The notes: a model not told the origin generated them from the letters alone. Counted from the first letter of the stretch, positions 27,875-59,881 are shown. The stretch is DNA of 64,000 nt from Macrostomum lignano (GCA_002269645.1 NIVC01000045.1:186001-250000), one strand, 5' to 3'. Translations and numbers: made by a program.

Positions 27875-30800
27875 TCAGCCAGTGACTGCTGCAAGATAAT
27901 CGGCAATCACTTAATGCAATGATCGCTGCGATCTCGATCACCTTTTTTTATTAGAGGCAGGGGGGTTGTGTGCACCCTGGCGTACTTTAAGCGACATGGG
28001 CACACAACCGGCGAGAGGCATTACTGCCCATTCCGCCGACTCCCCTGAGCAGGCACACAAGCGCGCGGATACGTACGCAGGCACACACTCACACAGGAGT
28101 GTACAGCGGCCCTAACTTTATTTTATCGTTAGGCAAGTGCACTTTACTGCGCCTTGGGGGGTTGGCTCTCAAGGCGTTAATTGCACGAGCAGAGCCAAGC
28201 CGAGATTCCAATTCAGCCCCAAATTAATGTGACTGCACTTGGAATCGAGCCTGGGTCGCTGGCACACCAGAGCAGCTGCGCTACCGCTGGGCTACGGCCC
28301 CCCGGTCTCTCACCTTGGTCTTTTATATGCGTTGTTGCAAAGCTATTGCAATGACCAGTCTGACTCACCGACCCCTGCATCAGCTGCTCGACCTTCTCTC
28401 TCGTGCCCTGGTGATCGCAAATGGCTCGCCTGTGTCTCTGAACCAGTAGGACAAGCAGGTCGCAGTCCTCGCAAAGCTCAAGAGTTACAAGCAGCTCCTG
28501 AACGTCTGGACTCGCACAGCGGAGAGTTTCTTCAAACCACAGCTCAAGATCCACATCTTGATCTAGGTAGAGTCTGAGAGCTTTCAGCAGCGCATCAAAG
28601 TTCACGTAGTACCAGTCGAACTGGCCACAGCTCAGTGAAAAATGCTGCCTGAATTTGGCTGGCAGAAATGACAGAACGGGCGGCTTGTCGGCTTGAATCA
28701 GGAGCTTCCAAACCGAACTGGATCTTTCCAGGTGCTGCCACACTGCCAACTCAGACTCTGCGTCAGTGGCGCGCACCTTCCAGCGTGACAGTCCTCGGCT
28801 GACCTGATGATAGCGGAACGAGCGCAAGACCCTTCGCGCTGCGTAGCGCATTTCGAATTTCAAGTAGATCAGCGCGAAGAGGCAGTACTTCGGACATGCA
28901 GCGTAGTTAGGAACTCTGCGAGCCAGCTTCATCATGACCTTTTTGTCTTCTTCGCGGCACTCTTCATGAGCCAACTTCAGCAGAATGGACCGGATCGCGT
29001 CATACACATCGTGGAACTGCAGGTTTGATGCCATCGGAACTGGCCTCGGGATCAAAACTGGCAGCACCAGGAACGGATGAAAGCTGAAGTTTTTCGCATC
29101 CTCCAGTGGTCGCAGCGTTTTGTAAAAACACGACACAACTTCGGACAGCTTTTCGATGATGTCAATCACAACATCTGAAATGAGCTTCTTTCCACTGTGG
29201 CGCCTCTTTAAGTACACCCAGGCATCTCTCATGAAGAAGTGCTTCATGCACTTGTCCGCATCTGAAATACCCTTGTCCAGCAGACACCGCAACAGAATCG
29301 AAAGTGCTCGTTTCGCCAGACTGATTAGGTTTTCGGACTGCCAGTAGCCAGCAGGCGTCTCATCCAGCAGGTAAAACATCAGACTCTTGGCTATGTAGGT
29401 CATGAGTCCATTGGCTCGAGCTGAAATCACTTTCTTAATGATGAACTTGATAAGCACGAACACGTGTCCCTGCTCAGTTGTGAGGCTTCTGAGCAGCCTT
29501 CGCTCCAGGAAGGTGGTGCTGATCCTCAGCTGCTGTCCGTCCTTGCCGGGGGGGAGCCGCTGCCACCAGGTGACAGGGAGACTCCAGCATCTCCTGCCTC
29601 AGGCTCCGCAGCACTGATGGCGCAATGTGAGTACTGTATCCTGGCTGCAGCACTTCCAGTTTTGGATAGCAACAGCAGCGGAACGCCCACACAAGATCGA
29701 CTGCCGGTCTGACCTCCGACCCGGCCCAGGTCTGCGACGGATTCGACGCTGTTTGGGGCGAAATTGTCAGTGGGTGAGCTTTTAGGAAAATGATCTTTTT
29801 AGCAAAATGCTGCGTTTGGTAAAATGATACAAAGGAGGGTGCACAAGTGAAAATGAAAATCACAGATTCCAGCCAATATCCTCTTACGCGATCCAGGCCA
29901 CTTAATGTGCCCGTCCTCATATTCAACTACCCTATGTCGTTCTTCATCGAAGCTGCAGTTGATGCAGCTGCAGCTGCCTTTGAGATGAAAGAGCATCCCT
30001 TTCGCAACGAAGCAGACGTCGATGTCGGAGTCTGCGTCCGTTTGGCCATCCAACCGAACCAGACTGTTGGACCAGCCTTCACTGTAGCTCCCGACGATGT
30101 ACACTTCGTAGTCATTGTACTCCTGAGCGTCGAGGCGGTTTCTAGTGATGCGCTGCAGGACATCAGAACATGCGGATTGCAGTTTCACACGATTCAGCTC
30201 AAATCCGGACTCCTTCAGGGCTCTGTGCAGCTGAGCACTTTTGTGGTTCTCTGTCAAACTTTCTGGTTCATCTTCCACAGCCTCCATATCGATGAGGACC
30301 TCGCGCAGGCTGTTTGAGTCGGGCTGCTCACTGTACGTTTTGGTGAGTTACAGTGGCTCATTTAGTCGTACCATTTTAGCAATTAATTATTACTAATAGA
30401 AGCAACACAATTTTTAGACTATATGATTAATCGACCCAGAGACTAACAATAGTATTTGCAGTGATATCAATGGTTGACAGGGTGCACTCGTATTGCTAGT
30501 GCGCTGTTACACGAGGGGATTTACGCAAAACGACTGACGTGGGAGAATACTGGAAACCTGCCAGCTGAGAGGACTTGAATTGAATGAATGCGAGGGCAAT
30601 CCAATCTTTGCAACAATGCATGCATGATTTAACCACATTTCAAATTTCACATTTCAAACATAACATTTTTGCATTTTACATTCGCATACATTACATTGAA
30701 TACTGTTTATCTCGGAAGTATTATTAAGGTTAGGACTAAGCGTACTATGATGATTTAACCATTTGGCATTCAGAATGCAAGCCTCATGGATCATTTTTCA

Positions 30801-32859
30801 CAGTACGAGCTGGCTCAGCCAGAATAAAATCAAAATGTATCAGAGTTACGCCCCGTCTATGTGAGTTTTTCTGTTGCACATTTTAAAACTACGCGTATAT
30901 ATTTTGCATGAAACAGAACCCACTGCTTTCTATAACAAAAGCTGTTGATCAGAGAACGTTAATTGAATTTGTATAACAATTTGGTTCCTTGTTAGCGTCT
31001 AATAGGGTATCTATGAGGATTGATCGTCGAAATATTGGACTGAGATTCAACTGTAAATAACTGTTTTAGAAGAAGCAATTCATACACTAATAGAGCGGCA
31101 TATGAGCTCATAATCGGCAGCTAACCATGCATTACCTTTCATATCCTTGGGACTGGAAATACTGGTGAAACTGATAGAAGCTGTTGTTGTCTTCTTTAAG
31201 GCAGAAAAAGCTACATTGCAGGTCATCTACCAAGATAGACTTTGTAACCTAAGTCTGCCACGTCTTAGACCGTCTGTGCTGATTGAGGAGGACGGACGTC
31301 TCATGATGAAAGAGAGAGAATGCTTGCAGAAAACTTGTGAATGAATATTCCAGACCGCCATTGAGGATATCCTAGTTCATGATCTGCAACGAGTAATAAG
31401 CTTGTCTGCTCGGTGGGTCCCAACACCAGGGCAGAGCACGACCGCATGTGCCGGTGAGGAACAAAAAGCATCTGGTCAGGACCGAGTGGTAATCCAGCCT
31501 TATTTGACACCGATTGCAGGCTTGTGAAGACTGTTTAATGCTTGCAAGAGGTCTAATGAGAGAGCTGGAGACGGTTTTGAAAAGTATCTGCGGTTTTCTA
31601 AACTTTCGTTGCTCTGTTGTAAGAAATAGCATCAACCATGCGTTTTACCGGACAACTCTTGTGTTATCAATGTATAGTATAGTTTAAAGGGTAACGTCAA
31701 TTTTCTTTTATGCTGCTGTTAGTAGTTTAGGTTTCGGAAATATCAGAAGATGGATTAGTTAAGGCTTTGCAGGATTTCCTATAACCACAAGTAAAGAGCA
31801 GTTGGGCTCCCAGGGTTACATCTCGAAGACCTCTGCCAGTCTTATTACCAGCAAGGGCATATTTCGAATATTCGAGATTTAAATCGGCTACAGAGTATCT
31901 TTATTGTGCGTAAAGAGAAACGAGTGCACTCTTCTGTATAGACCGACTCATCACTGACATCACGCAAACGCTTACCGCTCTTCGGGCAAAGACGTGCTGC
32001 GAGACTGAGCTGCAGGAACAAGCGAATTCTTGAATCGCTGCAGCCTCTCGTTGGTCTTCTCGTGCCGGATTCCGAGCTCCCTGGCGTGAGTCGCATGCTT
32101 GAGAAGCAGCTGCAAGACCTCACAATGCCCAAAGTGGCAGGCGATGGCAGCGGGGCTGAGCCTGTCCTTGTTGAGGTCGCCGAGCCCGCAGCCGAGCTGC
32201 AGCAGAGTCTGGGCAGCGGCCTCGTGCCCCATCGCTGCCGCAGCGTGCAGCGGAGTCGACCCGTCGCTGGCCAGCGAGTCGGCGGCGACTCCCGCCCGGA
32301 CGAGCAGCTCAATGGCGACCCGCTGGCCGTGGAGAGCCGCGGAGTGCAGCGGGGTCTGGCCGCGCGCATTCCTGGCGCTCGGATCCGCGGCTGCCAGCAG
32401 CAGAGCAGCGAGCACGAGCTGCTGCCTGAGCTGAGCAGCCAGGTGCACCGGCGAGTCTCCGTCTGCAAGCTGCTGGTCGCAGTCGGCTTGCCGGCTCAGC
32501 AGCTGCACGACTTCGAGGTGGCCGTTCCGCGAGGCGAGGTGCAGCGCCGAGGAGCTGGACTTCGTCACCAGGCTGGTGTCGGCCTAGGACTCGAGCAGCA
32601 GCCGGACCGCATCCCGGTGACCATGCATCGAGGCCAGGTGCAGAGCGGTCGCCCCGCTGCTGTCCTGAGCGTCCAGCTGAGCTCCGGCCTCGATGAGAAG
32701 CCTCGCCACCCTGGACTGGCCTCGCTCGGCTGCCCAGTGCAGCGCCGTCCGCTGCCGGTCGTCAGCGACGTCCGGACTGACGCTGCTCCGTAGAAACTGC
32801 CGCACCTTGCCGACTCTGCCGTCCATGGCGGCGCTCTTCAGCTCCGGGAGCAGGTTCAT
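27875..32859 (-). pseudogene. Ankyrin repeat-cGAS/Mab-21-like nucleotidyltransferase fusion gene (paralog M), disrupted in this sequence
   Basis: Exons 32859-31976 (canonical ANK repeats), 30330-29888 (GSYSEG...DSDID), 29748-28314 (VDLV, TYIAKSL, CMKHFF), probable last exon 27888-27875. Phases 2/1/1 agree. In-frame TAG at 32586-32584 and one extra base in the G7 run at 29548-29554. Confidence 0.75.
27943..28303 (-). mobile_element. tRNA-derived SINE (family 2)
   Basis: Head GGGGGCCGTAGCCCAGCGGTAGCGC...GGCTCGATTCC, ends AATAAAAAAA; unrelated to family 1; in the last intron of paralog M. Confidence 0.65.
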
Positions 32860-36105: not shown

Positions 36106-36246
36106 TGCCTCTGACAGCGCCGCCTGCTGTCACAGAGATCAGGGAAGGAAGTGATCACAATCAAGAGATTTACTGCAAGTTCGCAGACGTGTACAGTGTG
36201 GTTCTCCAGTGTGTGAGCGAGCTGCAGTCGGAATCGAGCGACAGAG
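36106..36246 (+). pseudogene. 141-bp relic of another cGLR copy
   Basis: LPLTAPPAVTEIREGS...FADVYSVVLQCVSELQSESSDR aligns at DNA level with 43700-43838 and ~58686-58808; flanked by a SINE and a 44-bp array. Confidence 0.85.
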
Positions 36247-36702: not shown

Positions 36703-38037
36703 TTGGCAATCGTCAGCCAGTCAGAAGGTATTTAAACAACATGAGCCAGGCTGCAGTGAAGGGGCAGCAGGAAAAGGGCTCCATGGCTGCAGAGGCTGCT
36801 TGGCTGCTGAGGCCGGAGTTCTGAGAGCTGAGCTCAGTGCTGCATTTGAGCGCCGGTCCTCAGCGGCTGTCCTGGCAGGGTCGCCAGAAGGGCAGGTCAA
36901 AATTTCAGTGGGGCCGCAGCAGCCCCTCAGCTCAGCCCACTGGGTTCGCCCCTGCTGCAAAATGGCCGAGTGCCGCACTGCTCAAACTCAAACTGCAGCA
37001 GGAGCGGAAAATGGTGAAACAAGCAGAGAGCGAATTCTCGGAGTGCGGCAGATGGGCGAGCGGTCAGCCCTGGCTACACGGGAGGCTTGGAAGCGGCCAG
37101 AACAAAAAATGTTCTCCATCACAAATTTTCAAGGTCGAGTTGTAAATAAACATAAAAAATATTTTCTTTAAAATTTCCCGTACCATAAACGCTGAACTCC
37201 AATGAAACTCGTGTCAGTTTTGTAGAATTCAGTCAGCTTTAAGGCGAGACCAAGATTGCTAAAGTTGGCTTTACTGTTCGGAATTTATCGAGAATTTCGA
37301 GTAGACAGTCACGTGCCTCTGCCAATCTTGACAAGCTGGTCTTTGGAAACACACTGACTAGCTGGCTGGGCCTCCTGAACCCACGTCTCCTGTGCCAAGG
37401 ATTTCTCTATACCTAGAACTGGATGAGAAACCTCTTTGTGGCGGCGTACCAACTTAGGCCCACCAACGAGCGTTATTCTAGCCCAGTATTCCCACAAAAC
37501 TTAGTTTTACACTAATTTTAAATCTGACTATTTCTGACTATACATTAAATTTTTTTTTCAATGCATACGTTTTTTATCTTGAATAATAAGTTTAGAAAGT
37601 GAAGTTAATAACAGTTAATTTGGAATAAAGTTGAAATGAAAAATAATAAGTTCAAAACAACAAAGCCCTATGATTTCTGTTATTGCTGTTGTTAAAAATA
37701 CAACGGCAAACAGAAAACGAACAACGCGACGGGTGAAGAAATAACGAGAAAAGTGTCGATTAAGGTGAATGAATGGTTATATTTCCCATTTATATACCTG
37801 TGCTAAGGCAATAAATGCTTGAGTGACAAGTTTATTGACCGAGGCGGGAAAGGAAGCTCAAGCAAGGCAGCTGAGCCTTCTGTGTTTTTTTAGCATCAGA
37901 GATTCAGAAACAACAAGCATGCTGATGTAGTCTTTCAAATGTTACCGACAACAGCAGCAACAGATTCACTTTCGTCACAGTACGTCCAAAATCGTCAATC
38001 TACTGATCGTGAATGTGCTATGGGGGGGGGGCTCGGC

Positions 38038-38448
38038 AGTGAGCTGTGAAGGTTAGGGAGAGAGCTGTGCGGGATGGGGAGTGAGCTGTGGGGGTTAGGG
38101 AGAGAACTGTGCGGGATGGGGAGTGAGCTGTGGGGGTTAGGGAGAGAACTGTGCGGGATGGGGAGTGAGCTGTGGAGGTTAGGGAGAGAACTGTGCGGGA
38201 TGGGGAGTGAGCTGTGGGGGTTAGGGAGAGAACTGTGCGGGATGGGGAGTGAGCTGTGGGGGTTAGGGAGAGAACAGTGCGGGATGGGGAGTGAGCTGTG
38301 GGGGTTAGGGAGAGAACAGTGCGGGATGGGGAGTGAGCTGTGGGGGTTAGGGAGAGAACTGTGCGGGATGGGGAGTGAGCTGTGGGGGTTAGGGAGAGAA
38401 CTGTGTGGGATGGGGAGTGAGCTGTGGGGGTTAGGGAGAGAACTGTGG
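38038..38448. repeat. 42-bp minisatellite, ~10 units (unit A)
   Basis: The paralogous array at 50768-50884 has ~3 units. Confidence 0.95.
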
Positions 38449-38873
38449 TGCGTTCCCCAGCCCTTTTTTGTTGTGTGTTTTGTCCTGAAAATTTCCTGAC
38501 AAAAGCCTTAAAGGTCAATGCGATTTTAATCAAAAGAAGATGAATTCCGATCTCCCTCTCTTTTGGTTGAAAAACTCAAATCCATGGCTATAGTTTTTTT
38601 AATGAAAACGAATTAAAATACGGCTATTTCATTTTTCTTTTCTACTGAATATCAGACGCTATTTTCATCGGCTATATTTTGTTTTGCAATCAATGGTACT
38701 CATAAATAACTAAATACTTTTTAAATTATAGTACCTGCAGTCATGACTGACGCCCTCTGAAACACCTGTACACATGAAAGAAGCGATGTGCATGCAACTT
38801 CCGTGTCCAAATCGCATGTGACTCATGATTGGTTAGCGATATCTCAGAGCGATGCTTTCCTGCCTTGCCTTAA

Positions 38874-39092
38874 TTGGGCCAGATGAGCAACCGACAGCTC
38901 AGCCGCAGCTCTTCTTGCGCAGCGCATCTGAAGGCTGCGTACGGCTGTTCAATCCAAGGACTGGGGGGTCGCCACACACCCTCAAATATCCCAGTTAATG
39001 CTGGTATCTATTTTACAGTGGGTGAACTGGAGCAATGGAGAGATAACTGTCTAATTGATCAGGGAGACACATTTTGTTTCAGTGGGATCATG
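38874..39092 (-). mobile_element. CORE-type SINE (family 1), head lost
   Basis: Same body as 51310-51596, truncated where units A and B diverge. Confidence 0.75.
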
Positions 39093-39945
39093 CGGAAATG
39101 CACTAGAAGGAGTGGCGGGTCGGCAGTGAGGGTGAGACAGAGAGAGAGGGGCAGAGAGCCGAGCTGCTTGCCAACCAACTGGCTGAAGCTGCGGCAGTTG
39201 AGATGCCGTGCAGCGGCAGAGTGGGAGAGAAAAACTCACCAAGGCTGGTTAACTCCCCTCTTTCTCCCCTTACCCCTTTCTCATCCCCCGTTTCTCCCTC
39301 TCTTCCTTCTCGCTCACACAAACGCGTCGTACATTTAACGCCTACTGAAACCGATGCACTAAGGCACTGAGCAGCGTTGCAAACCTCTCAGAAGGCCAGT
39401 AAATGATCTCAGACTGCACTGAGGCACAATGGGTCAGCTCTGCCTCATCAAGTACAGCTTGGGGTGGCCGCTGCAGCCACAGCTTCTCCGTGGCCATCCT
39501 GGGAGCTGAAGTGCTTGGAGGAGGGGCGGGCTCAGCGCTCATCCTCGGGAGAGAAGTTTCGGTTGCTACGGTGAAAGGGGGTTGTCGGCCTCACCAGAGA
39601 CTCAAAAGGTGGGCAGCTGAGAGATGAGGTTGTAAAATCTTTCTGGCAGCCAGCTGCAAAAACCTTTGAAACACCTGCCACTCTGAAAGCAGCCGTGACT
39701 GACATCTGCCACTCTGACAGCAGCCGTGACTGACATCTGCCACTCTGACAGCAGCCATGGAGCACAAGTGAGATTAATCAAATTTCATGATCTGAAATTC
39801 ATTGCAAACATTAAAGTTGCGAAGCCACCCTCCACTCTTTCAGCCTCCCCTTTCTCCAAATTAATTTAATTCAAAACTCAACTCACCCATCAACAGGAAA
39901 AAATTTACCTTCTAGTGGAAATCACTCACCAGCGCGCTAAGCAGA

Positions 39946-42900
39946 ATGAGCCAACAAATCACTGCTGAGGAGGCTGCCAAAACAGGAAATATCGAGGCAC
40001 TCAGAGGTTATCTGACTTTTCAACAAACAGAAAATGATATATATAACTTCTGCAAAAGCTACTCAGTATTTGCTGCAAGCGAGGGTCAGGTAGAAGCCCT
40101 CGAGTTTCTTGCGCTGAGAGTCGTTGATAAACAAAAACGAGATGACTGCTGCATAGAGGCTGCAAGATTTGCTACAGTTAAAGGTCAGTGGGAAGCCTTC
40201 GAGTTTCTGGTGCACACAGTCGCTGACCAGACAAACAGAGATCAGTGTTGCGTCGATGCTGCCGAATCTGCTGCAAGCAATGGTCATTTAGAAGTCGTCA
40301 AGCTTCTCGACCAGACAATCACTGACCAAACAAAAAGGGATCAGTGCTGCATCGAGGCTGCCAAACACGCTGCGAGACATCGTTACTGGGAAGTCTTCAA
40401 GTTTCTCGTCAAGAAAATCTCTGACCAAACAAAAAGAGATCAGTGCTGCATCGAGGCTGTAGAATCTGCTGCAAGCAATGGTCAGTTAGAAGTCGTCAAG
40501 ATTCTCGACCAGACAATCACTGACCAAACAAAAAGGGATCAGTGCTGCATCGAGGCTGCCAAATCTGCTGCAAGCAATGGTCAGTTAGAAGTCGTCAAGC
40601 TTCTCGACCAGACAATCACTGACCAAACAAAAAGGGATCAGTGCTTCATCGAGGCTGCCAAACACGCTGCGAGACATCGTTACTGGGAAGTCTTCAAGTT
40701 TCTCGTCCAGACGATCTCTGACCAAACAAAAAGAGGTCAGTGCTGCATCGAGGCTGCCAAATCTGCTGCAAGGAGAGGTCAAAGAGAAGTAGTCAGGTTT
40801 CTCGTCGACAAAGTCGCTGACCAAGCAAAAAGAGATCAGTGCTGCATCGAGGCTGCTGAATCCGCTGCAAGAAATGGTCATTTAGAAGTCTTCAAATTCC
40901 TCATCTCGTTTCTCTCATGTCCGGATCAGATAGCGAATCTCCGTTTCCTATACGCAGTCTCGGCTTGCTCTCGTCTTCACAAATATGTCGTTGCCTCCCT
41001 CGGCCTCGAGCCCGACTGGCTCTTCCAATCCAGCACCATCCTCAGCTTCACTGCAGCAATGGCCATCGAAGGCAGGAACTCTGTTCTCACCGACACCCTC
41101 TCTCGAATGCAGCCAGCTCCCATCACACAGCTGCTCCGTCTCTCCATCTCTCAAAGACACGTCGCTCTTGCTGTCACACTGATCAATGATGAGCGAGTCA
41201 GCACACAGCATGTCGATCTGCCAGACAGCACTGGAGCCACTGCTCTCATGCTGGCAGCTGATGCAGGTCATCACGAGCTCATTGAGAAACTCATCGATCT
41301 CGGTGCGTCAGTGCGTGCTGAAGACAGTCAGGTTCGGACTGCTCTGTCACGAGCGTGCGAAGCCGGTCACGTGCGAGCAGCCAAGGCTCTGATGGACAGA
41401 GGAGCAAATGCAAGTCATCGAGACGGTCGGGGTCTGACGTGTGCGCAGGTGGCACAACGATTTGAGCAGTGGCAGGTGCTGAGGCTATTGGTTCCTAGTG
41501 GAGCGGGGTGAGTGACGAAACAGAAGAAACAAAAATTAATACTGTTACAAGCGTAAATAAAAAATCCATCATGCATTGCAGAAGCTCAAAGGCCCGAAAG
41601 ACAGCCGCTCGAAAGTGAGTCTGAGGGTTGAGATCGGATTGGACTGAGTGCTGCAGCAGCTGCACTCTCAGCTCTCCTGCTTGTTCTGTCCATCCAACTC
41701 TGAGCAAATCGCCCACATGCATCTCGGATCATTCCAGGCTCCCAGACGACTCTCAGCAAGACAGGCGCCTGAGCGAGGAGCTGCATCGACTGCTCAGCGA
41801 TGCGGGATTCACCGAGCAGAGAGCAAAGTGTCAGCAGAGACTGGCTGACTGGCTGGAAGGAGTCGCTAGAGACCTCACACAGGATGGCAGGTGGATGACG
41901 GGCAGCTACGCAGAGGGCTGGGCCAACAGTCTGGTGCAAGTGAACGGCAGGACAGCTGCAGACTCGGACATTGACTGGACTGTGCTGGCTGCTGGGCAAG
42001 AGTTCCATCTTGAAGGTGGCTGCTATGGATTGTTTCTTACCTGCAGAGACGCCACTCGGCTGCAGGTCACGGAGGGCCACGCACAGGTGGCAGTGGGAGC
42101 AGGTGAGTGAGGCTGGGTTCATCATCAGAATGCTGAGATCCGCATGCAACTGGAAGCCCATTAACTTTGCTCAATTTCTAAATTCGCAACCGTGTGGCGC
42201 CCAGCCTCCAGCAGCTTCTGTGACTGCGAATGTCCGCTTGGGTGCTGAAACAAGCGGCAGGCGAAATTGAAAAGAAAACTCAGATGCCAACCGGCTGAGC
42301 CGGGCCATTGGGTTTTGAATTCACAGGCTCCGATTGCAGCAGAGTGGGTGCAGCGGTGCTTGGGTGACCCACGGTAGGCGGCATGGCTCTGCTGAGGTGC
42401 AGCCGCTCTCACTTGGAAAATTTCAAACAAAATAAACAGAAGCCGCCCTGACTGCCTGATTGGTGCCTTGCTAGGGGCACTGAGTCCTGATGATGCTAGA
42501 GCATTTGGAAAGAGCTAATTTAAAAAAATATGGGCACTGAGTCCTGATGATGCTTGAGCATTTGGAAAGAGCTAATTGAAAAAAATATGGGCACTGAGTC
42601 CTGATGATGCTAGAGCATTTGGAAAGAGCTAATTGAAAAAAATATGTTCGGCCTCTTCTGGCTGCAAATTTCATTGAAGCTTCAAAAGCAGTCGAGAAAA
42701 AATATTTTAGTTTTAAGTGATATTGGAATTCAAACTGAAATTTAAATTGGAAAGAAAACTTTGATGCCAACTGGAATCATTGGGCCGGGCCATTGGGTTT
42801 TGAATCTTGAGGATGCTTGAGCAGATGTGCTGAGCTGCTACCTGATGAAGCCAGAACAGCTGAAGCTGAAGCTAGACGAACGCAGTGGGTGCAGAGGCTC

Positions 42901-44634
42901 ATGCCTCACAGGTGCATATATTTAACTATTAAATCTGTGCGTATTTCGCATTAGCGCATGGGTATATTTCCAGTTTTCAGAAAACCCATCTTCTTCATTT
43001 GTCATAAAGCGACTCTCCGCTCACTGCGCTCTGCAGGCAGCCAACCTGCAGTGACAGCCACGGCGTGCGGTGTGCGGCCTGCACAGGACACGTGCCATGC
43101 GATCCAGTGCTGCAGCAGTTTCTGTGAGGACAGAATTGAAAAACTGACTCATAAAGGGCAGTATGTTCACCTCGTTCGGGCGACCAGACCGAGCTCGACC
43201 AACGAGCTCAGAGTGAGCTTCAGCTTCCAAGAGAAAGACATCATGAGAGACCTGAGCACAGTCCAGGGCCAGCTGTTCACACTCATCAAGTTCATCTTCA
43301 AAAGACGCTTGCCGCTCACTCTGGACACACCTGGACTCAAGACCTACCATGCAAAGACTCTGCTCTTCACGATGCTGGAGAAGCATGGTACCGATCCCGA
43401 AACTGAGGCTTGGCAGCCCCACAATCTGATCGCCTTGCTCAAGGAGTCTCTCGACATGATGCTGAGATTTATGAGGTCAAGGAGGTCGCCCGACGAGTGC
43501 ATGCCGCACTTCTTCATGCCCGACGCTCCGCTCTACTTCAAGAACGCTGGAATCGGCGGTGACTTCGACAACACGAAGGCGAGGATTCGAGACCGACTTT
43601 GTGAGCTGAGACGCGACATTGGCGGAGTGGTCGAGCAGCTGAGGAGACTCGTGAGACCTCTGCAGTCAGAGAAGTTCTACTTTCACCCGTTCACTCTGCT
43701 GCCTCTGACAGCGCCGCCTGCTGTCACGGAGATCAGAGAAGGCAGTGAAGAACTAGAAATGTACTACAAGTTCACAGACGTGTACAGTGTGGTGCACCAG
43801 TGTGTGAGCGAGCTGCACTCGGAATCGAGCGACAGAGACACCCTGATGAGGCAGCTTGACCTCCTGCATGAGCTGCAGTGGTGCAAGTGCGCCGATCTGT
43901 GCATGACCGCCATGGCGCATTTGAAGTTCGAAGAATCTGAGGAGGCTGAGAGACTCGCGATGGAGCTGCAAAGACATCAGGTTAAATCAGGGTTGAAGCC
44001 ACGGGATATTCTAAATAAGGATAGATACCAGATTTGTAAGATAAAACTGCCAGAAGACTCAGATTGGGCGTGGAGGTTCTGCCTCCCCTGCGACTCTCCG
44101 CCTCGCTTCCCATTCCTTCCCGAGTTCACGCAGACTCTGTTCACAGCCAGACTGTCACAGCCTCTCTCCTCCCACCTGTACGTGAACTTCCGCTGCCTGA
44201 GCTGGAGTCTCCAAGCTGAGCTGCTCCGCAATCACGCACCTGCAAATAAATTGGAGGATTGGAAACGAGAGCTGGAAGAAGACCCGGACTTGGAGGAGCT
44301 GCTCACTCTGGCTCACTACAGCGACTGCCGCGAGCACGTGAAGCTCAGCCTGCAGCAGATGAAGATGATCGAGAAAGAGAGACGCGTCGCCATGGAGACG
44401 CAGGACGAGGAGAAGATCGGCTGGGTCAGGCAGAAGCGGTGGCGAGTTTCGAACCGCAGCGGCAGCGACAGCGGCGCTCACCGCAGCAGGGAAGATGAGG
44501 AGCGGAGGCTGTGGGCGAGGGCGAGGCTGCGGCGAGACGGGGCCGACTTGGGGCGCCTGGTTGCCATGGAAACTGCAGCGGAGCAGAGAGACAGCTGGAC
44601 TCACGCCAAGCTCAGTCGGATGAGACTGCAGTGA
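39946..44634 (+). CDS. Ankyrin repeat-cGAS/Mab-21-like (cGLR) fusion protein, copy A, intact, 1185 aa
   Basis: Exons 39946-41507, 41582-41614, 41738-42102, 43037-44634; 3558 nt, open. About 10 atypical 33-aa ANK repeats, then canonical ANK repeats, then TGSYAEG...DSDID, QDTCH, HLVRA...LRVSFSFQEK, TYHAKTLLF, CMPHFFMP (Mab-21/cGAS fold motifs). Confidence 0.85.
42476..42645. repeat. ~57-bp repeat x3 in the last intron of copy A
   Basis: Single related seed at ~57570 in copy B. Confidence 0.85.
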
Positions 44635-49020: not shown

Positions 49021-49589
49021 TAAAGACCCTCTTTGATCTCCAGCCTTTACAAGTTTCCCCCTTTGCGTCATCCAGCGGTTTTGACGCTGCATGTCCAATG
49101 TTCCAGCCGTATTTCAGATTTCTTGCAATAATCGCAAGTAGAATGCTTCGGTGCTTTGAGCACAAATGACTAAACAAAAATTGAATATTTGAAAGACTAC
49201 TCAGCAGAGCTCAGGGGCAGAGGCTGTACCTATTTTATTTATAGATGCTTGATCCTCTCGTCCCCTGCTGCTGGAGGGGGAGGCTTACCTGGATAACAAC
49301 GGCAGAGTTCAGAAAACAAACACGCAAAGGTTTCACAATGAATTATCAGGTTGCTATGGGACGAGATGGATTATTCACTATCAGGTTTTTCGGCTAGGTT
49401 GAGTGGTCTGACACCCTGCTAAACTTCTAACCGATCACTTCCCTTAGCGTTATTTTGATTTGGCTTCTTTTTATATGGCCTGTACTTGAGGACTTCCAAA
49501 ACCAAAACCAACTAACGGCGCCAACTAACTGCGCCAGTTGAGAGCGCTATTTGAGAGCGCCAAATATGGGCGCCGCACTGATAGCGCGC

Positions 49590-50078: not shown

Positions 50079-50767
50079 TCAAACTGACTAGCTGGCTGGG
50101 CCTCCTGAACCCACGTCTCCTGTGCCAAGGATTTCTCTATACCTAGAACTGGATGAGAAACCTCTTTGTGGCGGCGTACCAACTTAGGCCCACCAACGAG
50201 CGTTATTCTAGCCCAGTATTCCCACAAAACTTAGTTTTACACTAATTTTACATCTGACTATTTCTGACTAAACATTAAATTTTATTTTTTCAATGCATAC
50301 GTTTTTTATCTTGAATAATAAGTTAAAAAAGTGAAGTAATAACAGTTAATTTGGAATAAAGTTGAAATGAAAAATAATAAGTTCAAAACAACAAAGCCCT
50401 ATGATTTCTGTTATTGCTGTTGTTAAAAATGCAACGGCAAACAGAAAACGAACAACGCGACGGGTGAAGAAAGAACGAGAAAACTGTCGATTAAGGTGAA
50501 TAAATGGTTATATTTCCCATTTATATACCTGTGCTAAGGCAATAAATGCTTGAGTGACAAGTTTATTGACCGAGGCGGGAAAGGAAGCTCAAGCAAGGCA
50601 GCTGAGCCTTCTGTGTTTTTTTAGCATCAGAGATTCAGAAACAACAAGCATGCTGATGTAGTCTTTCAAATGTTACCGACAACAGCAGCAACAGATTCAC
50701 TTTCGTCACAGTACGTCCAAAATCGTCAATCTACTGATCGTGAATGTGCTATGGGGGGGGGCTCGGC

Positions 50768-50884
50768 AGTGAGCTGTGAAGGTTAGGGAGAGAGCTGTGT
50801 GGGATGGGGAGTGAGCTGTGGGGGTTAGGGAGAGAGCTGTGTGGGATGGGGAGTGAGCTGTGGGGGTTAGGGAGAGAACTGTGG
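50768..50884. repeat. 42-bp minisatellite, ~3 units (unit B)
   Basis: Paralog of 38038-38448. Confidence 0.9.
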
Positions 50885-51309
50885 TGCGTTCCCCAGCCCT
50901 TTTTTGTTGTGTGTTTTGTCCTGAAAATTTCCTGACAAAAACTTTAAAGGTCAATGCGATTTTAATCAAAAGAAGATGAATTCCGATCTCCCTCTCTTTT
51001 GGTTGAAAAACTCAAATCCATGGCTATAGTTTTTTTAATGAAAACGAATTAAAATACGGCTATTTCATTTTTCTTTTCTACTGAATATCAGACGCTATTT
51101 TCATCGGCTATATTTTGTTTTGCAATCAATGGTACTCATAAATAACTAAATACTTTTTAAATTATAGTACCTGCAGTCATGACTGACGCCCTCTGAAACA
51201 CCTGTACACATGAAATAAGCGATGTGCATGCAACTTCCGTGTCCAAATCGCATGTGACTCATGATTGGTTAGCGATATCTCAGAGCGATGCTTTCCTGCC
51301 TTGCCTTAA

Positions 51310-51596
51310 TTGGGCCAGATGAGCAACCGACAGCTCAGCCGCAGCTTTTCTTGCGCAGCGCATCTGAAGGCTGCGTACGGCTGTTCAATCCAAGGACTGG
51401 GGGGTCGCCACACACCCTCAAATATCCCAGCTAATGCTGGTATCTATTTTACAGTGGGTGAACTGGAGCAATGGAGAGATAACTGTCTAATTGATCAAGG
51501 AGACACATTGTGTTTCAGTGGGATCATGCAGGAATCGAACCCTCAACCTTCAAAACAAGAGTAACCAGTAGAATAACCGCTCTAACCACTAGGTTA
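51310..51596 (-). mobile_element. CORE-type SINE (family 1)
   Basis: Body shared with the other three copies; head TAACCTAGTGGTTAGAGCG...GGTTCGATTCC. Confidence 0.8.
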
Positions 51597-53579
51597 AAAC
51601 CCCTAATTTATGACTGTTCAAGATAAGTGCTCAGATTCCAATGGAACTCGTGCTCACTTGTGAATAAGTTTTTCAGCTTTGAAGCGAGATTAATATAGCA
51701 AAATCCAGTTTTTTTTCTATTTGTAAATAATCGAGAATGTTGAGTAGACAGCCAAGTGCCTCCGCTTATCTTCACAAGCTGTTCTTTGGAAACGAACTGG
51801 CCTGGGCCGCCTGGGCCTCCACGCCTCCTGTGCGCCCTGGCCAGCCTATCGATTGCTCTGGGGTGGGACAGAGGTGCCGTTGCTCAGTGTGCGTTTTGAA
51901 CACGCTTCTCCTGCGAAAGTCGAGTTTTACGAGTACTCACTGGTCTGCGGGTAGGGATGCCTGAGCTTGCGCTATCAGCCCGCCCGATGTGCGGGAATGA
52001 CTTTCTGTGACGGCTTCGTACGTTCATGTCGACAAGTAGTCACTGCTGTGCATTTTTGTACTTTTCCTGGGAGCTTCAGAGACGGGCACAGCGCTCATGC
52101 TCGCGAGAGAAGTTTCTGTTGATAAAGTCAGCGGTTGTCGCCGCTCACCAAAGGCGACAAAAGGTGAACTGCTGGGACATGAAGCGGTAAATTTTTTTGG
52201 CAACGGGCTGCAAAAACCGCTAGAACTGACACCTGCACTCTGACAGCAGCCGTGACTGACATCTGCCACTCTGACAGCAGCCGTGTCTGACATTTGCCAT
52301 TCTGTCCCTTCTTTCATCCCCAACTTTCTCTTTTTTCCGTCTCATTTGCACTCACTCACCCTTACCCTCTCAATTTCGACTAAAACTATCCACAGCCGCT
52401 CGATGGGTCAATACCTCAGCTGCCATTGCACCGTCATCACGGCAGTGCGCACTCACCGGCTGCCTCGACCAGGACAGACACAGAAGACCCACTTTTGCAT
52501 AGAAGATGCTGAACTGGCTGCACGGCATGGTCAGTGGGAAGTCGTCAAGTTTCTCGTGCTAAAACTTGCTGACCAAACAAAAAGAGATCAGTGCTGCATA
52601 TACACTGCAAAATATGCTGCAACCAATGGTCATTTAGAAGTCGTCAAGTTTCTTTTGGACACAGTCACTGACCAAATAAGTAGAGATCAGTTCTGCATCG
52701 AGGCTGCAAAATCTGCTGCAAAATATGGTCAATTAGAAGTGATGAATTTCCTACTCTCGCGTCCCTCAAGTCCGGATCAGAGAGCGAAGCTACATTTCCA
52801 ATTTGCAGTCGCGGCTTGCTGTCGTCTTCGCGAAGACGTTGTTGCATCCCTCGGCCTCGAGCCCGACTGGCTCTTCCAATCCAGCTCCATCCTCAGCTTC
52901 ACTGCAGCAATGGCCATCGAAGGCAGGAACTCTGTTCTCAACGACACCCTCTCTCGAATGCAGCCAGCTCCCATCACACAGCTGCTCCGTCTCTCCATCT
53001 CTCAAAGACACGTCGCTCTTGCTGTCACACTGATCAATGGTGAGCGAGTCAGCACACAGCGTGTCGATCTGCCAGACAGCACTGGAGCCACTGCTCTCAT
53101 GCTGGCAGCTGATGCAGGTCATCACGAGCTCATTGAGAAACTCATCGATCTCGGTGCGTCAGTGCGTGCTGAAGACAGTCAGGGTCGGACTGCTCTGTCA
53201 CGAGCGTGCGAAGCCGGTCACGTGCGAGCAGCCAAGTCTCTGATGGTCAGAGGAGCGGATGCGAGTCATCGAGACGGTCAGGGTCTGACGTGTGCGCAGG
53301 TGGCACAGCGGTTTGAGCAGCGGCAGGTGCTGAGGCTATTGGATCCCAGTGGAGCGGGGTGAGTGAAGCGAGAATTTAATGAATATTTTCAGTATCGTAT
53401 CGTATATTAGTGAAGCATTATTGTAATTTTATTAAGAAGAGCTAAGCAAAAAACTTTATACAATCGAAAACATTTAAAGTATATTTGTGGTTAGGCAAAG
53501 GGAAAGAAAAGGAAAGTCATTAAAGACACAAAATGAAAAAATGGATTTTGCATTAATGAATGATACAAAAAATCATTTT

Positions 53580-53908
53580 TGTGCCCGACTTTCGGGGGTA
53601 GAAACGAGAGGGGCCAGCCAAACCCTGGGGCTCAGGCGGCTTATCAGCCAGCCAGCCAATGCGAGCAGCCCAGGGTGGGGCGGGGCAAGGAGGGAGGGGT
53701 AGGGCAAGCACCCAGATTGGACAGGAATGGGACAAGGGACTTGGAGCGAAAAGGCTAGGCCAGGGTTGAGGCTTACGCCTCTCACAAGCCCTGGCACGGG
53801 CGCGAGACGGGGGACGAGGCGGGGCGGCATGAAAAACAAAAACAAGAACAACGAAAAACAAGGGCAACAGAAGAGCAGGGTACTGGAAAGACGCTGTGCG
53901 GCCCAACA
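53580..53908. mobile_element. Possible solo LTR
   Basis: GC-rich island bounded by TGT...ACA inside an AT-rich intron, absent from copy A; no clean target-site duplication seen. Confidence 0.3.
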
Positions 53909-54479
53909 CTTTCAAGGGTTTTCGATGATGCAGATTTTAAATTTAAGCTTCATGTTTTGGTAGCTTCAACCCAACTATAAACTCGTATGCAGCTTAAAGA
54001 CAACCAATGGGGCATGAGGAATGGGGGTTTAGATTCGAAAGTTTCTAAATTGGGATCGAGTTTATTCATATATATGCCTTATCTCTAGATGAGGCTGTGA
54101 TTTATAGAAGCTTGGGTCGAAGTTTTCATGAGTATAAATTGTCTTAGATTGATGTCTAATAACTAACCATAATAGTCAACACAGCAGTAGTTATAAGCCA
54201 CGCTATATAAGCAGCATAAGAACCCACCATTTTAAGCTGCTATTCTTCATTTCATTGGCTGGCGTATTTTTCGTCTGTCTCTTGTTTGGGCCAGTCCTAT
54301 CATGTCTCTCGCCAGGGGGGCACCTGATTGGCTAGCCTTCCTCCTTCTGTCTCTTTCTTGCTCTTCAATTTTGCGAGTTTTGCAAGCCACCCCAACCCAG
54401 TCATGCGTGGCTTAGCCCCACTCAGCCCCCTGCTCACCCAGTATTTATGTGCACCCTCGCCTGGCTCTTGCCCTCCCCT

Positions 54480-55770
54480 GACTTACTTGACTTGACTTAG
54501 CTGCAGGGCTAAGCGGGAAGGCGCCAACGCCCATTTCGCTAATCCCTGAACGGCCGACGCGTCGCAATGGACGAAGGGTTGGCGCCGTCAAGTGAAGTCC
54601 CCCCCCCCAGTGTCGCCAGCAGCTATGGTGCTCTCTGGAAAGGACAGTTCAACCGCCCTGCGGGTGGCCCGGAGGCAGCGCATGAGCTGATTAAAGTTTT
54701 CGGGTCCTCAGTAATAGATGTGCGTGGCCGGAGGTAAGTGAGTCTGGCTCGCATGAAGGCGGGACAGATGCTGATGAAATGCTCAGCGGTTTTGTCACCT
54801 GAGTTACAAAAACTGCAGATCGCGTTGTTGGTGTTGTCCTGCAGGTACTGGTGCCTGGAGAAGCAGCCGTAACCTGAGAGGGGCATAGTGGCAGCCCGGA
54901 TGTCTCTACGCGAGAGGCGCAAGAAGAGCTTCCGGAGCTGATGAGAGGGCTGAGGGACAGCGTCTCTAGGTTGCCTGCCGGTAGTGTAGTTCGCCCAAGC
55001 TGAGCGTTGCTGAGTCCTGATCCACGCTTTGATGCGCGAGGCGAGGACACAGCCGGGAATCGGGACAATGGGTTTGATAGCGTTGTCTCAGGTTGAGCGT
55101 TGAAGCAATGCCATCGGTGAAGACGCGATTTGCCTGGCACTCATTGAGAACGTTAAGGCACAGGTCGCTATGCAGAACAAGGTTCCGCTTAGCAGGTACT
55201 CTAATGTAGAGGAATTTGACGGCGGCATCTAGTAGACGCCGCGTCGTTCTAGCCGCCTCACCCCTGACGAAGAGGTCGAAAGGCGGTAGATCAAGGAAGG
55301 CCCCCATGCCAGAAAAGGGCTTGGACCTGGTGGCGTTGCAGATAAGCCTACGCGCTCTACTCTGGATCGTGTTGAGCGAATCTGCATGGCTTTTAACCTG
55401 GGTGGCGCTGACCCAGACGACAGAGGCGTACGTAATGACGGATCTAATTTCTGAAGTGTAGATCTACCAAAGTCACTTTTGGTAGAAGTGCCAAGTTCTC
55501 GGTCGGAGCTGGGCCAGGATGGCTGAGGCACACTTGGCTTTTGCTTTCACGTGGGAGGACCATTTGAGCCGGTAGCCTCATAGGCTGACCCCGAGACATC
55601 TGGTCAGATGCGCGAAGGCAATATTTCTGCCGTAAAGCTGCTGAGGTCTTATGTTCCAGCGTATTCTACTGGTGAACATATTGGCAACAGTTTTGGGCTC
55701 AGAGAGTACCAAACCATTGTCATTGGCCCAGGATTCTGCTTTGCTCATCTTCGAGGGAAGCCATGAATCA
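54480..55770 (-). mobile_element. 5'-truncated non-LTR retrotransposon (LINE), degenerate
   Basis: Minus strand gives WANDNGLVLSEPKTVANMF...TRCLGV (end of RT), ITYASVVW...IQSRARRLICNA...LDLPPFDL, a CCHC knuckle CSFCNSGDKTAEHFISIC, and an (AAGTC)n-like tail at ~54480-54500. It lies in intron 1 of copy B. Confidence 0.8.
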
Positions 55771-56373
55771 TGCCTGTATGAGTTCTAGCATAATTTAGCA
55801 GAACTGGCCGAAGAGAAAAAGCTCACAGTCTCCTAACGGGCGGTGCGATAATAATTATTTAGAATATTTGATTCTTCCCGATATTGCGCATTGATATTTA
55901 GATACTGTGCAGTGTACAAATGCGACTAGGAAATGCACACTGAGCCATGCGCGGGCCTGAAGAACGAGGGCAGACGCCAACAAGTTAAATACATGTAAAG
56001 TAGATCACATGTGCTGATGCACTTCTGCTTCTGCCTTCTGCCTTCCTCCGCTTTACCTGAAAAAGCATTGGGTGTTGATAAAGCTGCACTGACTGGTTGC
56101 TTGGCCAGGAAATACAATGAAAGTTTCCGACACAATTAAGTGATTTGTGCAGCAAAAGAATCCCATACTCAACTGCTGTGAGAACCCTGGCTTTATTTAC
56201 CGAATTGCAGAAGCCCAGAGGCCCGACAGGCAGCCGCTCACCACTCGGCTTCAGGCTCTCATCGGTGAGTCTGACCGGTTCGGCTTTCACTGCCGCATTG
56301 CGCCTTCCAACACAGGCTGGCAGCTTGGGGCAGAAATTGCAGTAAAACAGCAGGGTTGAGATTGGGTTGGACT

Positions 56374-56560
56374 GAGTGCTGCAGCAGCTGCACTCTCAGC
56401 TCTCCTGCTTGAGATGCCAGTCTGAGTGCTGCAGCAGCTGCACTCTCAGCTCTCCTGCTTGAGATGCCAGTCTGAGTGCTGCAGCAGCTGCACTCTCAGC
56501 TCTCCTGCTTGAGATGCCAGTCTGAGTGCTGCAGCAGCTGCACTCTCAGCTCTCCTGCTT
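56374..56560. repeat. 50-bp repeat x~3.7 in intron 2 of copy B
   Basis: Units start at 56374, 56424, 56474, 56524; single copy at ~41646 in copy A. Confidence 0.9.
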
Positions 56561-59500
56561 GTTCTGTCCATCCAACTCTGAGCAAATCACCCACATGCAT
56601 CTCGGATCATTCCAGGCTCCCAGACGACTCTCAGCAAGACAGGCGCCTAAGCGAGGAGCTGCATCGACTGCTCAGCGATGCGGGATTCACCGAGCAGAGA
56701 GCAAAGTGTCAGCAGAGACTGGCTGACCGGCTGGAAGGAGTCGCTCGAGTCCTCACACAGGAAGACAGGCGGATGACGGGCAGCTACGCAGAGGGCTGGG
56801 ACAACAGTCTGGTGCAAGTGAACGGCAGGACAGCTGCAGACTCGGACATTGACTGGACTGTGCTGGTTGCTGGGCAGCATTTCCATCTGGAAGGTGGCTG
56901 CGACAGAGAGGGATATGGTTCCTGCCGAGACGCCACTCCGCTGCAGGTCACGGAGGGCCACGCACAGGTGGCAGTGGGAGCAGGTAAGTGAGGCTGGGTT
57001 GATCATCAGAATGCTGAGATCAGCATACAACTGGAAGCCCATTAACTTTGCTCAATTTTAAATTCGCAACCGAGTGGCGCCAAGCCTCCAGCAGCTTCTG
57101 AGACTGCAAATGTCGTCTTGGGTGCTGAAACAAGCGGAGGGCGAAATTGAAAAGAAAACTCTGATGCCGACTGGCTGAGCTGGGCCATTGGGTTTTGAAT
57201 TCACAGGCTCCGATTGCAGCAGTGTGTTTTGTTTGAATAACGCCAAGTCAATGAATTATGGTAGTTTGAAATTAAGCTATATTTTAGCGGCAACGGTCCT
57301 AGGGTCTTGTGTTCATAAATGAAAATATTCGAAGCTTAGCAAACAAAGGAGAGTACCGTATCGCGTCGCATAAACCATAGACTATTTCCGAAGTATTATA
57401 AAAGTCTATGCTTTGCAGTACTCATAGCAATACGCAACAGGTGCAGCGGTGCTTGGGTGACCCACGGTAGGCGGCATGGCTCTGCTGAGGTGCTGCTGCT
57501 TTCACTTGGAAAATTTTAATCAAAACAAACCGAAACCGCCCTGACTGCCTGATTGGTGCCTTGCTGCGCGGCACTGAGTCCTACTGATGCTTGGGCACTG
57601 TGCTGAGCTGCAACCTGATGAAGCCAGAGCAGCTGAAGCTGAAGCTGGGCGAACTCAGTGGGTGCAGAGGCTCATGCCTCACAGGTGCATATGTTTGGCT
57701 CTTCAGAGAGCACCAAAATTCTGTGGCGTCTCTGATGAGCTGAATAAACGTGCATGACCTGACTTCAGCCAAGTCAATTGTGCACTTGCACTTATCAAAT
57801 ATATATTTAAACAACAAAGTGAAAAACACAGATGGTAGCTGAGTGAATGTCTAAGCTAAGTTTTAGTTAAAAATTAGGCGAAAAATTTACCTTTTTGCTT
57901 GAAAGGATATTTAATTGGATAGAGAAACACTAGAAAAGCAAAGAAAAAATCAGCAGTTTGAAACCAACCCATCTTTTTTACTCGCCACAAAGCGACTCTC
58001 CGCTCACTGCGCTCTGCAGGCAGCCAACCTGCAGTGACAGCCACGGCGTGCGGTGTGCGGCCTGCACAGGACACGTGCCATGCGATCGAGTGCTGCAGTG
58101 GTTTCTGTAATGACAGAGTTAAAAAACTGATTGATGACAGTTATACTGCAGTCCACCTCGTTCGGGCGACCAGACCGAGTGAGACCAACGAGCTCAGAGT
58201 GAGCTTCAGCTTCCAGGAGAAAGACATCATGAAACGACTGGGCACAGTCCAGGGCCAGCTGTTCACACTCATCAAGTTCATCTTCAAGAGACACTTGCCG
58301 CTCACTCTGGACACACCTGGACTCAAGACCTACCATGCAAAGACTCTGCTCTTCACAATGCTGGAGAAGCATGGCACAGATCCTGAAACTGACGCTTGGC
58401 AGCCCCACAATCTGATCGCTCTGCTTAAGGAGTCTCTCGACATGATGCTGAGCTTCATCGACTCGAGCAGCTCGCCCGATGAGTGCATGCCGCACTTCTT
58501 CATGCCCGACGCTCCGCTCTACTTCAAGAACGCTGGAATCGGCGGCGACTTCGACAACACGAAGGCGAGGGTTCGAGACCGACTTTGTGAGCTGAGAAGC
58601 GACATCGGCGGAGTAGTCGAGCAGCTGAGGAGACTCGTGAGACCTCTGCAGTCAGAGAAGCTATACTTTCACCCGTTCACTCTGCTGCCTCTGACAGCGC
58701 CGCCTGTTGTCACGAAGATCAGTGAATGTTTTGACGAAAAATTAGCAGACGTGTACAGTGTGGTGCACCAGTGTGTGAGCGAGCTGCAGTGGGAATCGAG
58801 CGACAGAGACACTCTGATGAGGCAGCTCAGTCTCCTGCATGAGCTGAAGTGGTGCAAGTGCGCCGATCTGTGCATGACCGCCATGGCGCATTTGAAGTTC
58901 GGAGAATCTGAGGAAGCTGAGAGACTCGCAATGGAGCTGCAGAGACATCAAGTTGAGTCGGGGTACTAGCCACAGGATATTCAAGAACGCAAATATCTAT
59001 CGTATATAATGAAACTAGTGAAATTATCTGATTCAACTGAATTTGACTTGGCGTGGAGGTTCTGCTTCCCATGCGACTCTCTGCCTCGCTTCCCATTCCT
59101 TCCCGAGTTCACGCAGAATCTGTTCACAGCCAGACTGTCACAGCCTCTCTTCTTCCATCTGTACGTAAACTTCCGCTGCCTGAGCTGGAGTCTCCAAGCT
59201 GAGCTGCTCCGCAATCACGCACCTGCAAATAAATTGGAGGATTGGAAACGAGAGCTGGAAGAAGACCCGGACTTGGAGGAGCTGCTCACTCTGGCTCACT
59301 ACAGCGACTGCCGCGAGCACGTGGAGTTTAGTCTGCAACAGATGGAGATGATCGAGAAAGAGAGACGCGTCGTCATGGAGACGCAGGACGAGGAGAAGAT
59401 CGGCTGGGTCAGGCAGAAGCTGGAGAGACTTGATGCAGCAGCCGGAGTCCTCAAAGTCGAGTCGCAAAGTCGAGGTCGGAAAAGAAAGGCCGAGTCAGAC

Positions 59501-59881
59501 TGACTGCCTGGTGCGGTGTTCGATACTGACACATTTTTCATGAACTTTGGGTTTGTTCAATCAAACTGTTTATTTTTCTGCATGCCCACTTGATGAGGGA
59601 CCTCCGTGTTATGTCAATTTCTGCCTAATTGAGCAACTGAAATGGTGCTTTGGTTTGTCTAGCTTTCAGGAAATGAGCACATCGAGCGTCATCGAATTCG
59701 AGTAGCCCTCCTGCTCTGAACTGGAGTTTTGCACAATTGTGCTGCAATTCAATTCACACTGCATGCTGAATTGCTTCTTCTGTTCGAACTGCGTGTCTGC
59801 TTTGATGCGGGCTTTTCTCTGCGATTTTTATGCGGAGTTCAATCTCCAATTGCCAATGCTTTCCAATGCAAATATTCAAGT

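Follow-up and report, generated by a model that had tools for sequence, protein, structure and literature searches.

The question raised by a 64,000-nucleotide stretch of the Macrostomum lignano genome (GCA_002269645.1, NIVC01000045.1:186001-250000; hereafter the window, with positions counted from its first letter) is whether a series of exons encoding ankyrin (ANK) repeats and exons encoding a nucleotidyltransferase (NTase) form fused genes of the cGAS-like receptor (cGLR) type, and what such genes may do in a flatworm. The cluster contains three ANK–cGLR paralogs, copy M on the minus strand and copies A and B on the plus strand, together with a 141-bp relic (Table 1). These are, in the explanation that we favor overall and consider probable, tandem paralogs of a large lineage-specific ANK–cGLR family, in which copy A is intact and likely encodes a cytosolic sensor. 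An earlier reading of the window (the original prediction) had counted three genes plus a relic, a count that agrees with our results in the number of paralogs and in the presence of the relic, with the correction that only A is intact, B and M being damaged.

Membership of the cluster genes in the ANK–cGLR family, with the fold shared by Mab-21 and cGAS, is almost certain. Each of the three copies has ankyrin repeats in its upstream exon (Pfam Ank_2: A, 6e-36; B, 1e-23; M, 5e-25), with a period of 99 bp in the DNA, and a check with hidden Markov models of the proposed cGAS/Mab-21 identity located Mab-21_C in all three last exons, at 27.8 bits in A and 27.1 bits in B, above the Pfam cutoff of 24.1 bits, and at 21.0 bits in M, under it. 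The catalytic motifs lie where they had been placed, namely MTGSYAEG, DSDIDW and PAQDTC in A and B, and IVGSYSEG, DSDIDV and PAVDLV in M, which supply the GS, the DSDID and the third Asp (QDTC in A and B, VDLV in M). The active site reads M-T-G-S, X20, D-I-D-W, X57, Q-D-T in A and B, and I-V-G-S, X20, D-I-D-V, then V-D-L, in M; compared with the cGLR motif of Li et al. (2023), h[QT]GS X8-20 [DE]h[DE]h X50-90 h[DE]h (PMC9980059), all acidic residues and the GS are present, the deviations being a V for [QT] in M and polar residues beside the third Asp in A and B. Across the family, the full set of G-S, D-h-D and third Asp was retained in 104 of 120 domains (87%), including those of A, B and M.

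Homology searches and structural modeling point in the same direction. The NTase part of copy A retrieved 43 close homologues, almost all from M. lignano, the best being PAA68676.1 (P0001) at 88% identity, and a family profile run against the sequences in the PDB matched only cGLR1 (8gjy, 3.9e-5), cGAS and MAB21L1. An exhaustive profile search of 1.84 billion representative proteins gave 1363 matches, 90 of them at E<=1e-30; all eight of these strong matches that were checked belonged to M. lignano, and among nine distant matches sampled (~1e-15 to 1e-17), eight carried both Pfam Mab-21 and Mab-21_C and aligned from profile position ~110, a region that includes the third-Asp strand, while one carried Ank only. 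The proposed comparison with cGAS at the structural level was likewise borne out: the NTase and C-terminal part as modeled with AlphaFold2 (581 residues; mean predicted local distance difference test score, pLDDT, 80.7; predicted template-modeling score, pTM, 0.85) matches cGAS and MAB21L1, which accounted for all of the top 50 Foldseek matches in the PDB (E 2e-5, probability 1.0, ~390 aligned columns, targets of ~350 residues).

Three observations weigh against this assignment. The Pfam NTase-core model PF03281 gave no match on the proteins of the copies; the third Asp of A and B stands in a Q-D-T context, with polar flanks, and not between hydrophobic residues; and the target-normalised template-modeling (TM) scores from Foldseek were moderate (0.5-0.56), with root-mean-square deviations of 7-9 Å. 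The N-terminal NTase lobe is predicted from the motifs together with the structural alignment. In sequence and in model, the proteins of the cluster present the three bioinformatic features by which Li et al. (2023) recognized cGLRs, that is, the motif, two-lobe homology and the predicted structure, with minor flanking deviations.

Downstream of the cGLR core, a C-terminal domain of ~235 aa (DWAWRFC...FLPEF...YVNF...) is conserved in all subfamilies, at residues ~950-1185 of copy A (window ~43930-44634) and at 28213-~28950 in M. It was modeled confidently by AlphaFold2 (pLDDT 81) as helices and a small sheet, and no significant match to it was found in the PDB, either by comparing the profile with PDB sequences or by Foldseek. 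Some profile matches covered the C-terminal domain alone, in models annotated as a kinase (P0048) and as Ig-like (P0049), which may perhaps be annotation chimeras. As a separate observation, four residues of the copy A core (H83, C88, C139 and C140; exons 41738-42102 and 43037-) are invariant or nearly so across the family and flank the strand of the third catalytic Asp; they may represent a candidate structural metal site, located elsewhere than the zinc thumb of cGAS.

The ANK–cGLR architecture is not new for this species, since it was already catalogued for M. lignano in 2023, and the copies in the window are distinct, poorly annotated paralogs. Li et al. (2023) class M. lignano proteins as cGLRs and list Ank_2 on PAA68676.1, PAA86972.1, PAA45980.1 and others (PMC9980059, Table S2); therefore, a claim of high novelty for the ANK–cGLR genes is unwarranted. 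The closest of these to copy A, PAA68676.1, comes from the same species and family, displays the same ANK–cGLR order, and is 88% identical over the NTase and C-terminal part, while PAA86972.1, among the listed proteins (e.g., PAA68676.1, PAA93208.1, PAA86972.1), resembles copy M. None of the window copies is identical to an annotated protein, with the exception of copy M, which has a near-identical twin inside a chimeric UniProt model of 3379 aa. Conversely, the tandem arrangement, the pseudogenes, the mini-exon and the C-terminal domain are undiscussed in that paper (PMC9980059), and a literature search combining Macrostomum with cGAS, cGLR, STING or Mab-21 returned no dedicated study of the family.

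The next point concerns whether the ANK exon and the NTase exons belong to a single gene. The splice donors of the ANK exons agree with those originally proposed, being cg|gtaagc after 31976 in M, gg|gtgagt after 41507 in A and gg|gtgagt after 53358 in B, all in phase 2 and all overlapping the stop of the open reading frame (ORF), and the phase-1 intron common to the NTase exons was also recovered (A, 42102/43037; B, 56983/58020; M, 29888/29748). The proposed in-frame joining of the ANK exon to the NTase exons is predicted to be direct in M, whereas in A and B it most likely proceeds through an extra mini-exon. That of copy A was recognized by homology, most likely correctly, to the 54-nt mini-exon of the annotated paralog P0002, which encodes SPEARQGAVHRLDSGLHR between the ANK and NTase exons at 23309-23363 of a second M. 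lignano locus (L002, NIVC01001853.1 10001-26085), and to 56211-56264 in B, an intact homologue with phase 2 in and out, bounded by ttgcag| and |gtgagt. A homologous acceptor of the NTase exon, cattccag|G, is found before 41738 in A and 56616 in B. The direct joining of the ANK exon of A to an acceptor at 41657, giving 1201 aa, had been considered and was replaced after the mini-exon and the homologous acceptor at 41738 were found from P0002, both arrangements being in frame; the alternative acceptors at 41657, 41660 and 41672 likewise keep the frame.

ANK and NTase very probably lie on one transcript, an arrangement that can be weighed against its alternative, that of separate adjacent genes whose in-frame junctions would be coincidental. 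A single in-frame junction has a 1-in-3 chance, several candidate acceptors are available, and the NTase exon of copy M contains an internal ATG (IDMEAV...), all of which would suit separate genes. Conversely, a usable start codon is lacking from the NTase exon of A and of B, where the sole in-frame ATG before the GS motif precedes it by 2 residues; an ATG is also supplied by the end of the spliced leader of M. lignano (PMC8629364), yet at none of the internal acceptors would it fall in frame. The ANK ORFs, in turn, lack any stop codon other than the one made by the donor site. Furthermore, exon order and phases recur in the distant copy M, only 34% identical to A, and ANK and NTase have been duplicated as a unit in two lineages. 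Transcript-derived proteins argue for the fusion as well: the BOX15 proteins are ORFs from genome-guided transcript assemblies (PMC5730564), dozens of paralogs of this origin bear both domains, and several map in order on the exons of A, with breaks at 41507/8, 42102/4 and 43030-37 and with their alignment to exon 1 extending up to 41508. Two points count against the single transcript. All splice junctions were deduced from the sequence, and P0002 fuses the ANK exon of the first of two tandem ANK–cGLR copies at L002 to the NTase exons of the second; because this model spans tandem copies, short-read transcript models of the family may be chimeric, and the transcript support partly so. With these points considered, separate adjacent genes seem scarcely credible, and the fused gene is the arrangement that we retain.

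With four exons encoding 1185 aa, copy A is intact and has the sole uninterrupted reading frame among the three copies. Its first exon combines a degenerate array of 33-aa ANK-like units (99-bp unit x7.8, 40129-40902) with canonical ANK repeats. In copy B, an in-frame TAG at 58967-58969 interrupts codon 776 of 953, where copy A has AAG. Copy M has two lesions: one of its ANK repeats is interrupted by a TAG (32586-32584), and a C7 run (29554-29548) carries a +1 frameshift. The UniProt entry A0A1I8H6S2, from another assembly, contains a version of copy M that is ~98% identical, with GAG at the TAG position and in frame at the C run; because this near-identical copy is intact at both sites, the lesions appear to be either particular to the copy in the window (haplotype or homeologue) or assembly errors, the homopolymer indel being especially suspect. 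The same version displays the family-consensus Lys in GLKTY, where copy M of the window has Met.

The signs of birth-and-death turnover that had been proposed for this tandem cluster are visible: one intact copy, two lesioned copies, one relic, and a differing number of repeats, the 33-aa ANK unit being present 7.8 times in A and 2.2 times in B. The exons of A and B are ~89% identical, and their upstream blocks are more alike (98%). Identity between the last exons (43037-44440 against 58020-59423) is patchy, ranging from 52 to 100% per 60 bp, which suggests gene conversion or mosaic exchange among family members. The dN/dS ratio between A and B was 0.70 in the ANK region and lower (0.48-0.49) in the NTase exons, values that indicate a relaxed yet present constraint and may in part reflect the decay of B. 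B and M are probably recently damaged duplicates, with the relic marking an older loss; the cluster would turn over through unequal crossing-over, gene conversion and pseudogenisation.

Since two of the three copies carry disabling lesions, which speaks against a functional cluster, it could be argued that the whole cluster is decaying and that A too is non-functional (unexpressed or mis-spliced), its open frame being the remnant of a recent duplication. Besides the nonsense and frameshift lesions of B and M, the relic, and the relaxed dN/dS of 0.5-0.7, this possibility draws on the mini-exon of A, which is 21 nt shorter than its homologues and runs into in-frame stops if the 123-nt intron behind it is retained, and on the lack of any AATAAA or ATTAAA up to 600 bp from the stop codon of A and of B. 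However, copy A combines an open frame of 1185 codons with consensus splice sites and all conserved motifs, dN/dS stays below 1, and the lesions of M are absent from the ~98% identical copy of the other assembly, so that some lesions would be recent, allelic or assembly errors. Decay of the whole cluster is accordingly quite improbable, and copy A is taken below as a probably functional gene.

Regarding function, the protein would act as a cytosolic sensor, in which the ANK array, variable in repeat number, would either recognize a ligand or a partner protein or keep the enzyme inactive; once engaged, the array would lead the NTase core to make a nucleotide second messenger from nucleoside triphosphates, and the signal would leave via a receptor encoded outside the window or via the conserved C-terminal domain. 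As the original prediction had noted, no STING-like effector is visible, and the window encodes no STING, kinase or caspase; a search of it for kinase and caspase domains returned only ANK similarity. We place catalytic activity as a second-messenger synthase slightly short of an even chance. Several points tell against it. Nucleic-acid sensors are typically strongly basic, and the isoelectric point (pI) of 7.7 of the cGLR part departs from this; moreover, we know of no cyclic-nucleotide receptor in M. lignano. Loss of cGAS and STING has been reported in flatworms, from Schistosoma (Wu et al., 2014, PMC4117786). In the 140-enzyme screen of Li et al., five M. lignano NTase cores were expressed (PMC9980059, Table S3, rows 89-93), row 93 being PAA68676.1 (BOX15_Mlig016402g1), the closest paralog of A, and row 89 an M-like protein, and the Note column that marks the 15 characterised active enzymes is blank for all five. 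This blank column is no proof of inactivity, because the enzymes were screened as isolated cores and against nucleic-acid ligands alone (PMC9980059).

An alternative is that the cGLR fold gives no nucleotide signal and that the protein serves as a scaffold or adaptor, assembling partners through the ANK array and the C-terminal domain. Such a role would fit the M. lignano cores screened by Li et al., none of which is listed among the characterised actives, the lack of a known STING in flatworms (as judged from Schistosoma), and the conserved extra C-terminal domain with no relative in the PDB. A precedent is available (PMC12928593), and such a role has been proposed both for MAB21L1 and for the shrimp Mab21 proteins, activators of IKK-epsilon. 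Additionally, some paralogs located outside the window, in which a kinase or caspase domain is fused C-terminally, have lost catalytic residues, namely P0009 (kinase; DIGW/QST), P0029 and P0068 (caspase; DMNW/ES and DINW/QT), which implies that the fold can persist without catalysis. Against the scaffold, every catalytic residue is kept in the 104 of 120 family domains mentioned above, those of A, B and M among them, which is hard to explain without selection for catalysis, and the absence of the screened cores from the list of 15 is open to the limits of that screen. A scaffold is thus unlikely, if a serious contender, and a cytosolic sensor encoded by copy A remains our preferred interpretation.

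The family can be compared with known systems. Vertebrate cGAS and Drosophila cGLR1 (PDB 4k9b, 8gjy and others) share with the flatworm proteins the bilobed NTase fold, the GS loop, the DhD plus D triad and the Mab-21_C bundle, at ~13% sequence identity; the flatworm proteins differ in an extra N-terminal ANK array, a C-terminal extension of ~235 aa and a near-neutral pI, and a cGAS-type zinc thumb was not identified in them, a different set of invariant His and Cys residues being present. MAB21L1 (PDB 5eog/5eom) displays the same fold and is among the top structural matches to the flatworm model; however, it is a single-copy, conserved developmental gene without ANK fusion, whereas the flatworm family is multi-copy, lineage-specific and of fast turnover. 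By description, a further likeness is found in a coral, Stylophora pistillata, whose expanded set of cGLRs includes NTase cores joined to ankyrin repeats (Li et al., 2023, Fig. 4C); the coral, in contrast, has 7 STING receptors and characterised active cGLRs, while the flatworm has no known receptor or product. The NLR clusters of plants and animals and the cGLR radiations of bivalves resemble the cluster in their tandem paralogs, pseudogenes, variable repeat arrays and patchy identity. Unlike NLRs, the flatworm family has no NB-ARC or NACHT module, and its immune role is putative.

Table 1. Features of the ANK–cGLR cluster in the window
Feature	Position	Strand	Description
Copy M, ANK exon	31976..32859	-	in-frame TAG; phase-2 donor; Ank_2
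Copy M, NTase exon	29888..30330	-	IVGS, DIDV; in-frame entry from ANK donor; phase-1 donor c|gtaaga
Copy M, last exon	28213..29748	-	VDL third Asp, Mab-21_C, C-terminal domain; +1 frameshift
Copy M, possible extra 3' exon	27604..27888	-	junction used in A0A1I8H6S2; hydrophobic stretch
Relic	36106..36246	+	141-bp last-exon fragment; 89% identical to A 43700-43837
Upstream block of copy A	37350..39099	+	1.7 kb; 98% identical to block upstream of B (50080-51535)
Copy A, exon 1	39946..41507	+	start codon, ANK; ORF with Ank_2; phase-2 donor
Copy A, mini-exon	41582..41614	+	33 nt (SSKARKTAAR); phase 2 in and out; flanks ttgcag| and |gtgagt
Copy A, NTase exon	41738..42102	+	spine helices, MTGS, DIDW; phase-1 donor at end
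Copy A, last exon	43037..44634	+	third Asp (QDT), Mab-21_C bundle, C-terminal domain, tail, stop
Copy B, exon 1	52403..53358	+	starts MGQYLS; shorter ANK array (99-bp unit x2.2); phase-2 donor as in A
Copy B, insertion in intron 1	53553..55531	-	intron ~2.8 kb longer than in A; apparent non-LTR retrotransposon 3' fragment
Copy B, mini-exon	56211..56264	+	54 nt (SPEARQAAAHHSASGSHR); matches SPEARQ... linker of annotated P0002 and P0009
Copy B, NTase exon	56616..56983	+	MTGS and DIDW retained
Copy B, last exon	58020..59503	+	premature TAG; otherwise open to 59503

Further features of the copies are as follows. The start of copy B, MGQYLS, and that of the paralogs P0001 and P0004, MGQNQS, fit the N-myristoylation consensus MGxxxS, and copy A, beginning MSQQ, falls outside it. 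The first intron of B contains an apparent 3' fragment of a non-long-terminal-repeat (non-LTR) retrotransposon, recognized by the C-x2-C...H-x4-C knuckle in which an ORF at 54623-54922 ends, a motif typical of the C-termini of non-LTR retrotransposon ORF2 proteins; two ORFs tested from this insertion gave no Pfam match. In the intron after the mini-exon of B (56350-56560), a ~50-bp unit (gagtgctgcagcagctgcactctcagctctcctgcttgagatgccagtct) is repeated in tandem ~4 times, with AG acceptor-like sites in each repeat; the unit is present once in copy A and several times in L002. At the 3' end of copy M, a consensus donor (tcg|gtgagt after 28369) and an acceptor (cttgcag| before 27888) could lead into a further exon, which would encode a 20-residue, transmembrane-like hydrophobic stretch (FSLVALFICICGLSPLVFLA).

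The public annotation of the locus is unreliable. UniProt A0A1I8H6S2 (P0056, 3379 aa) aligns with the minus strand of the window between 62262 and 19473, many segments being 100% identical, and is evidently a chimeric gene model, crossing copies A and B in antisense and taking in a fragment resembling a long interspersed nuclear element (LINE) as well as neighboring genes; inside it lies the real, intact version of copy M described above. Upstream of the cluster, Pfam recognized FAM91, a RING-finger gene, NRDE-2 and an RRM protein. The ORF with the NRDE-2 domain (17924-18949; Pfam 1e-28) had no homologue at E<=1e-5 in a word-index protein search, being either absent from the annotated sets or overlooked by the search index. 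The window as a whole is eukaryotic M. lignano DNA in which minisatellites are abundant, with arrays at 13124-15433, 22785-24404, 38018-38533, 46220-46792 and 48614-50227; the long arrays are read open in several frames and on both strands, and the resulting ORFs, the longest of 769 aa, are spurious and not genes.

Immunity of the cGAS–STING type is usually described as absent from flatworms, and yet M. lignano, a free-living basal flatworm, has a very large ANK–cGLR family, of ~90 clusters (50% identity) that match the family profile at E<=1e-30. The existence of the family was already published, and the value of the present analysis lies in a better annotation and in the leads that it provides, namely the C-terminal domain, the catalytically dead effector-fused paralogs and the missing downstream receptor. 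The window displays the evolution of this family at the base-pair level, through tandem duplication, change in repeat number, gene conversion and decay, and copy A supplies a clean gene model of full length on which experiments can be based. Being amenable to transgenesis and RNA interference, M. lignano constitutes a practical system in which to ask which stimuli an ANK-fused cGLR detects and by what route it signals, no STING being known. More speculatively, and with a low probability, M. lignano may have built from its ANK–cGLRs a STING-independent sensor repertoire, with output via the C-terminal domain or, in some paralogs, via a fused caspase or kinase lacking NTase catalysis. If true, this would represent a new wiring of cGLRs, nearer to the logic of NLR or apoptosome-type receptors than to that of cGAS–STING.

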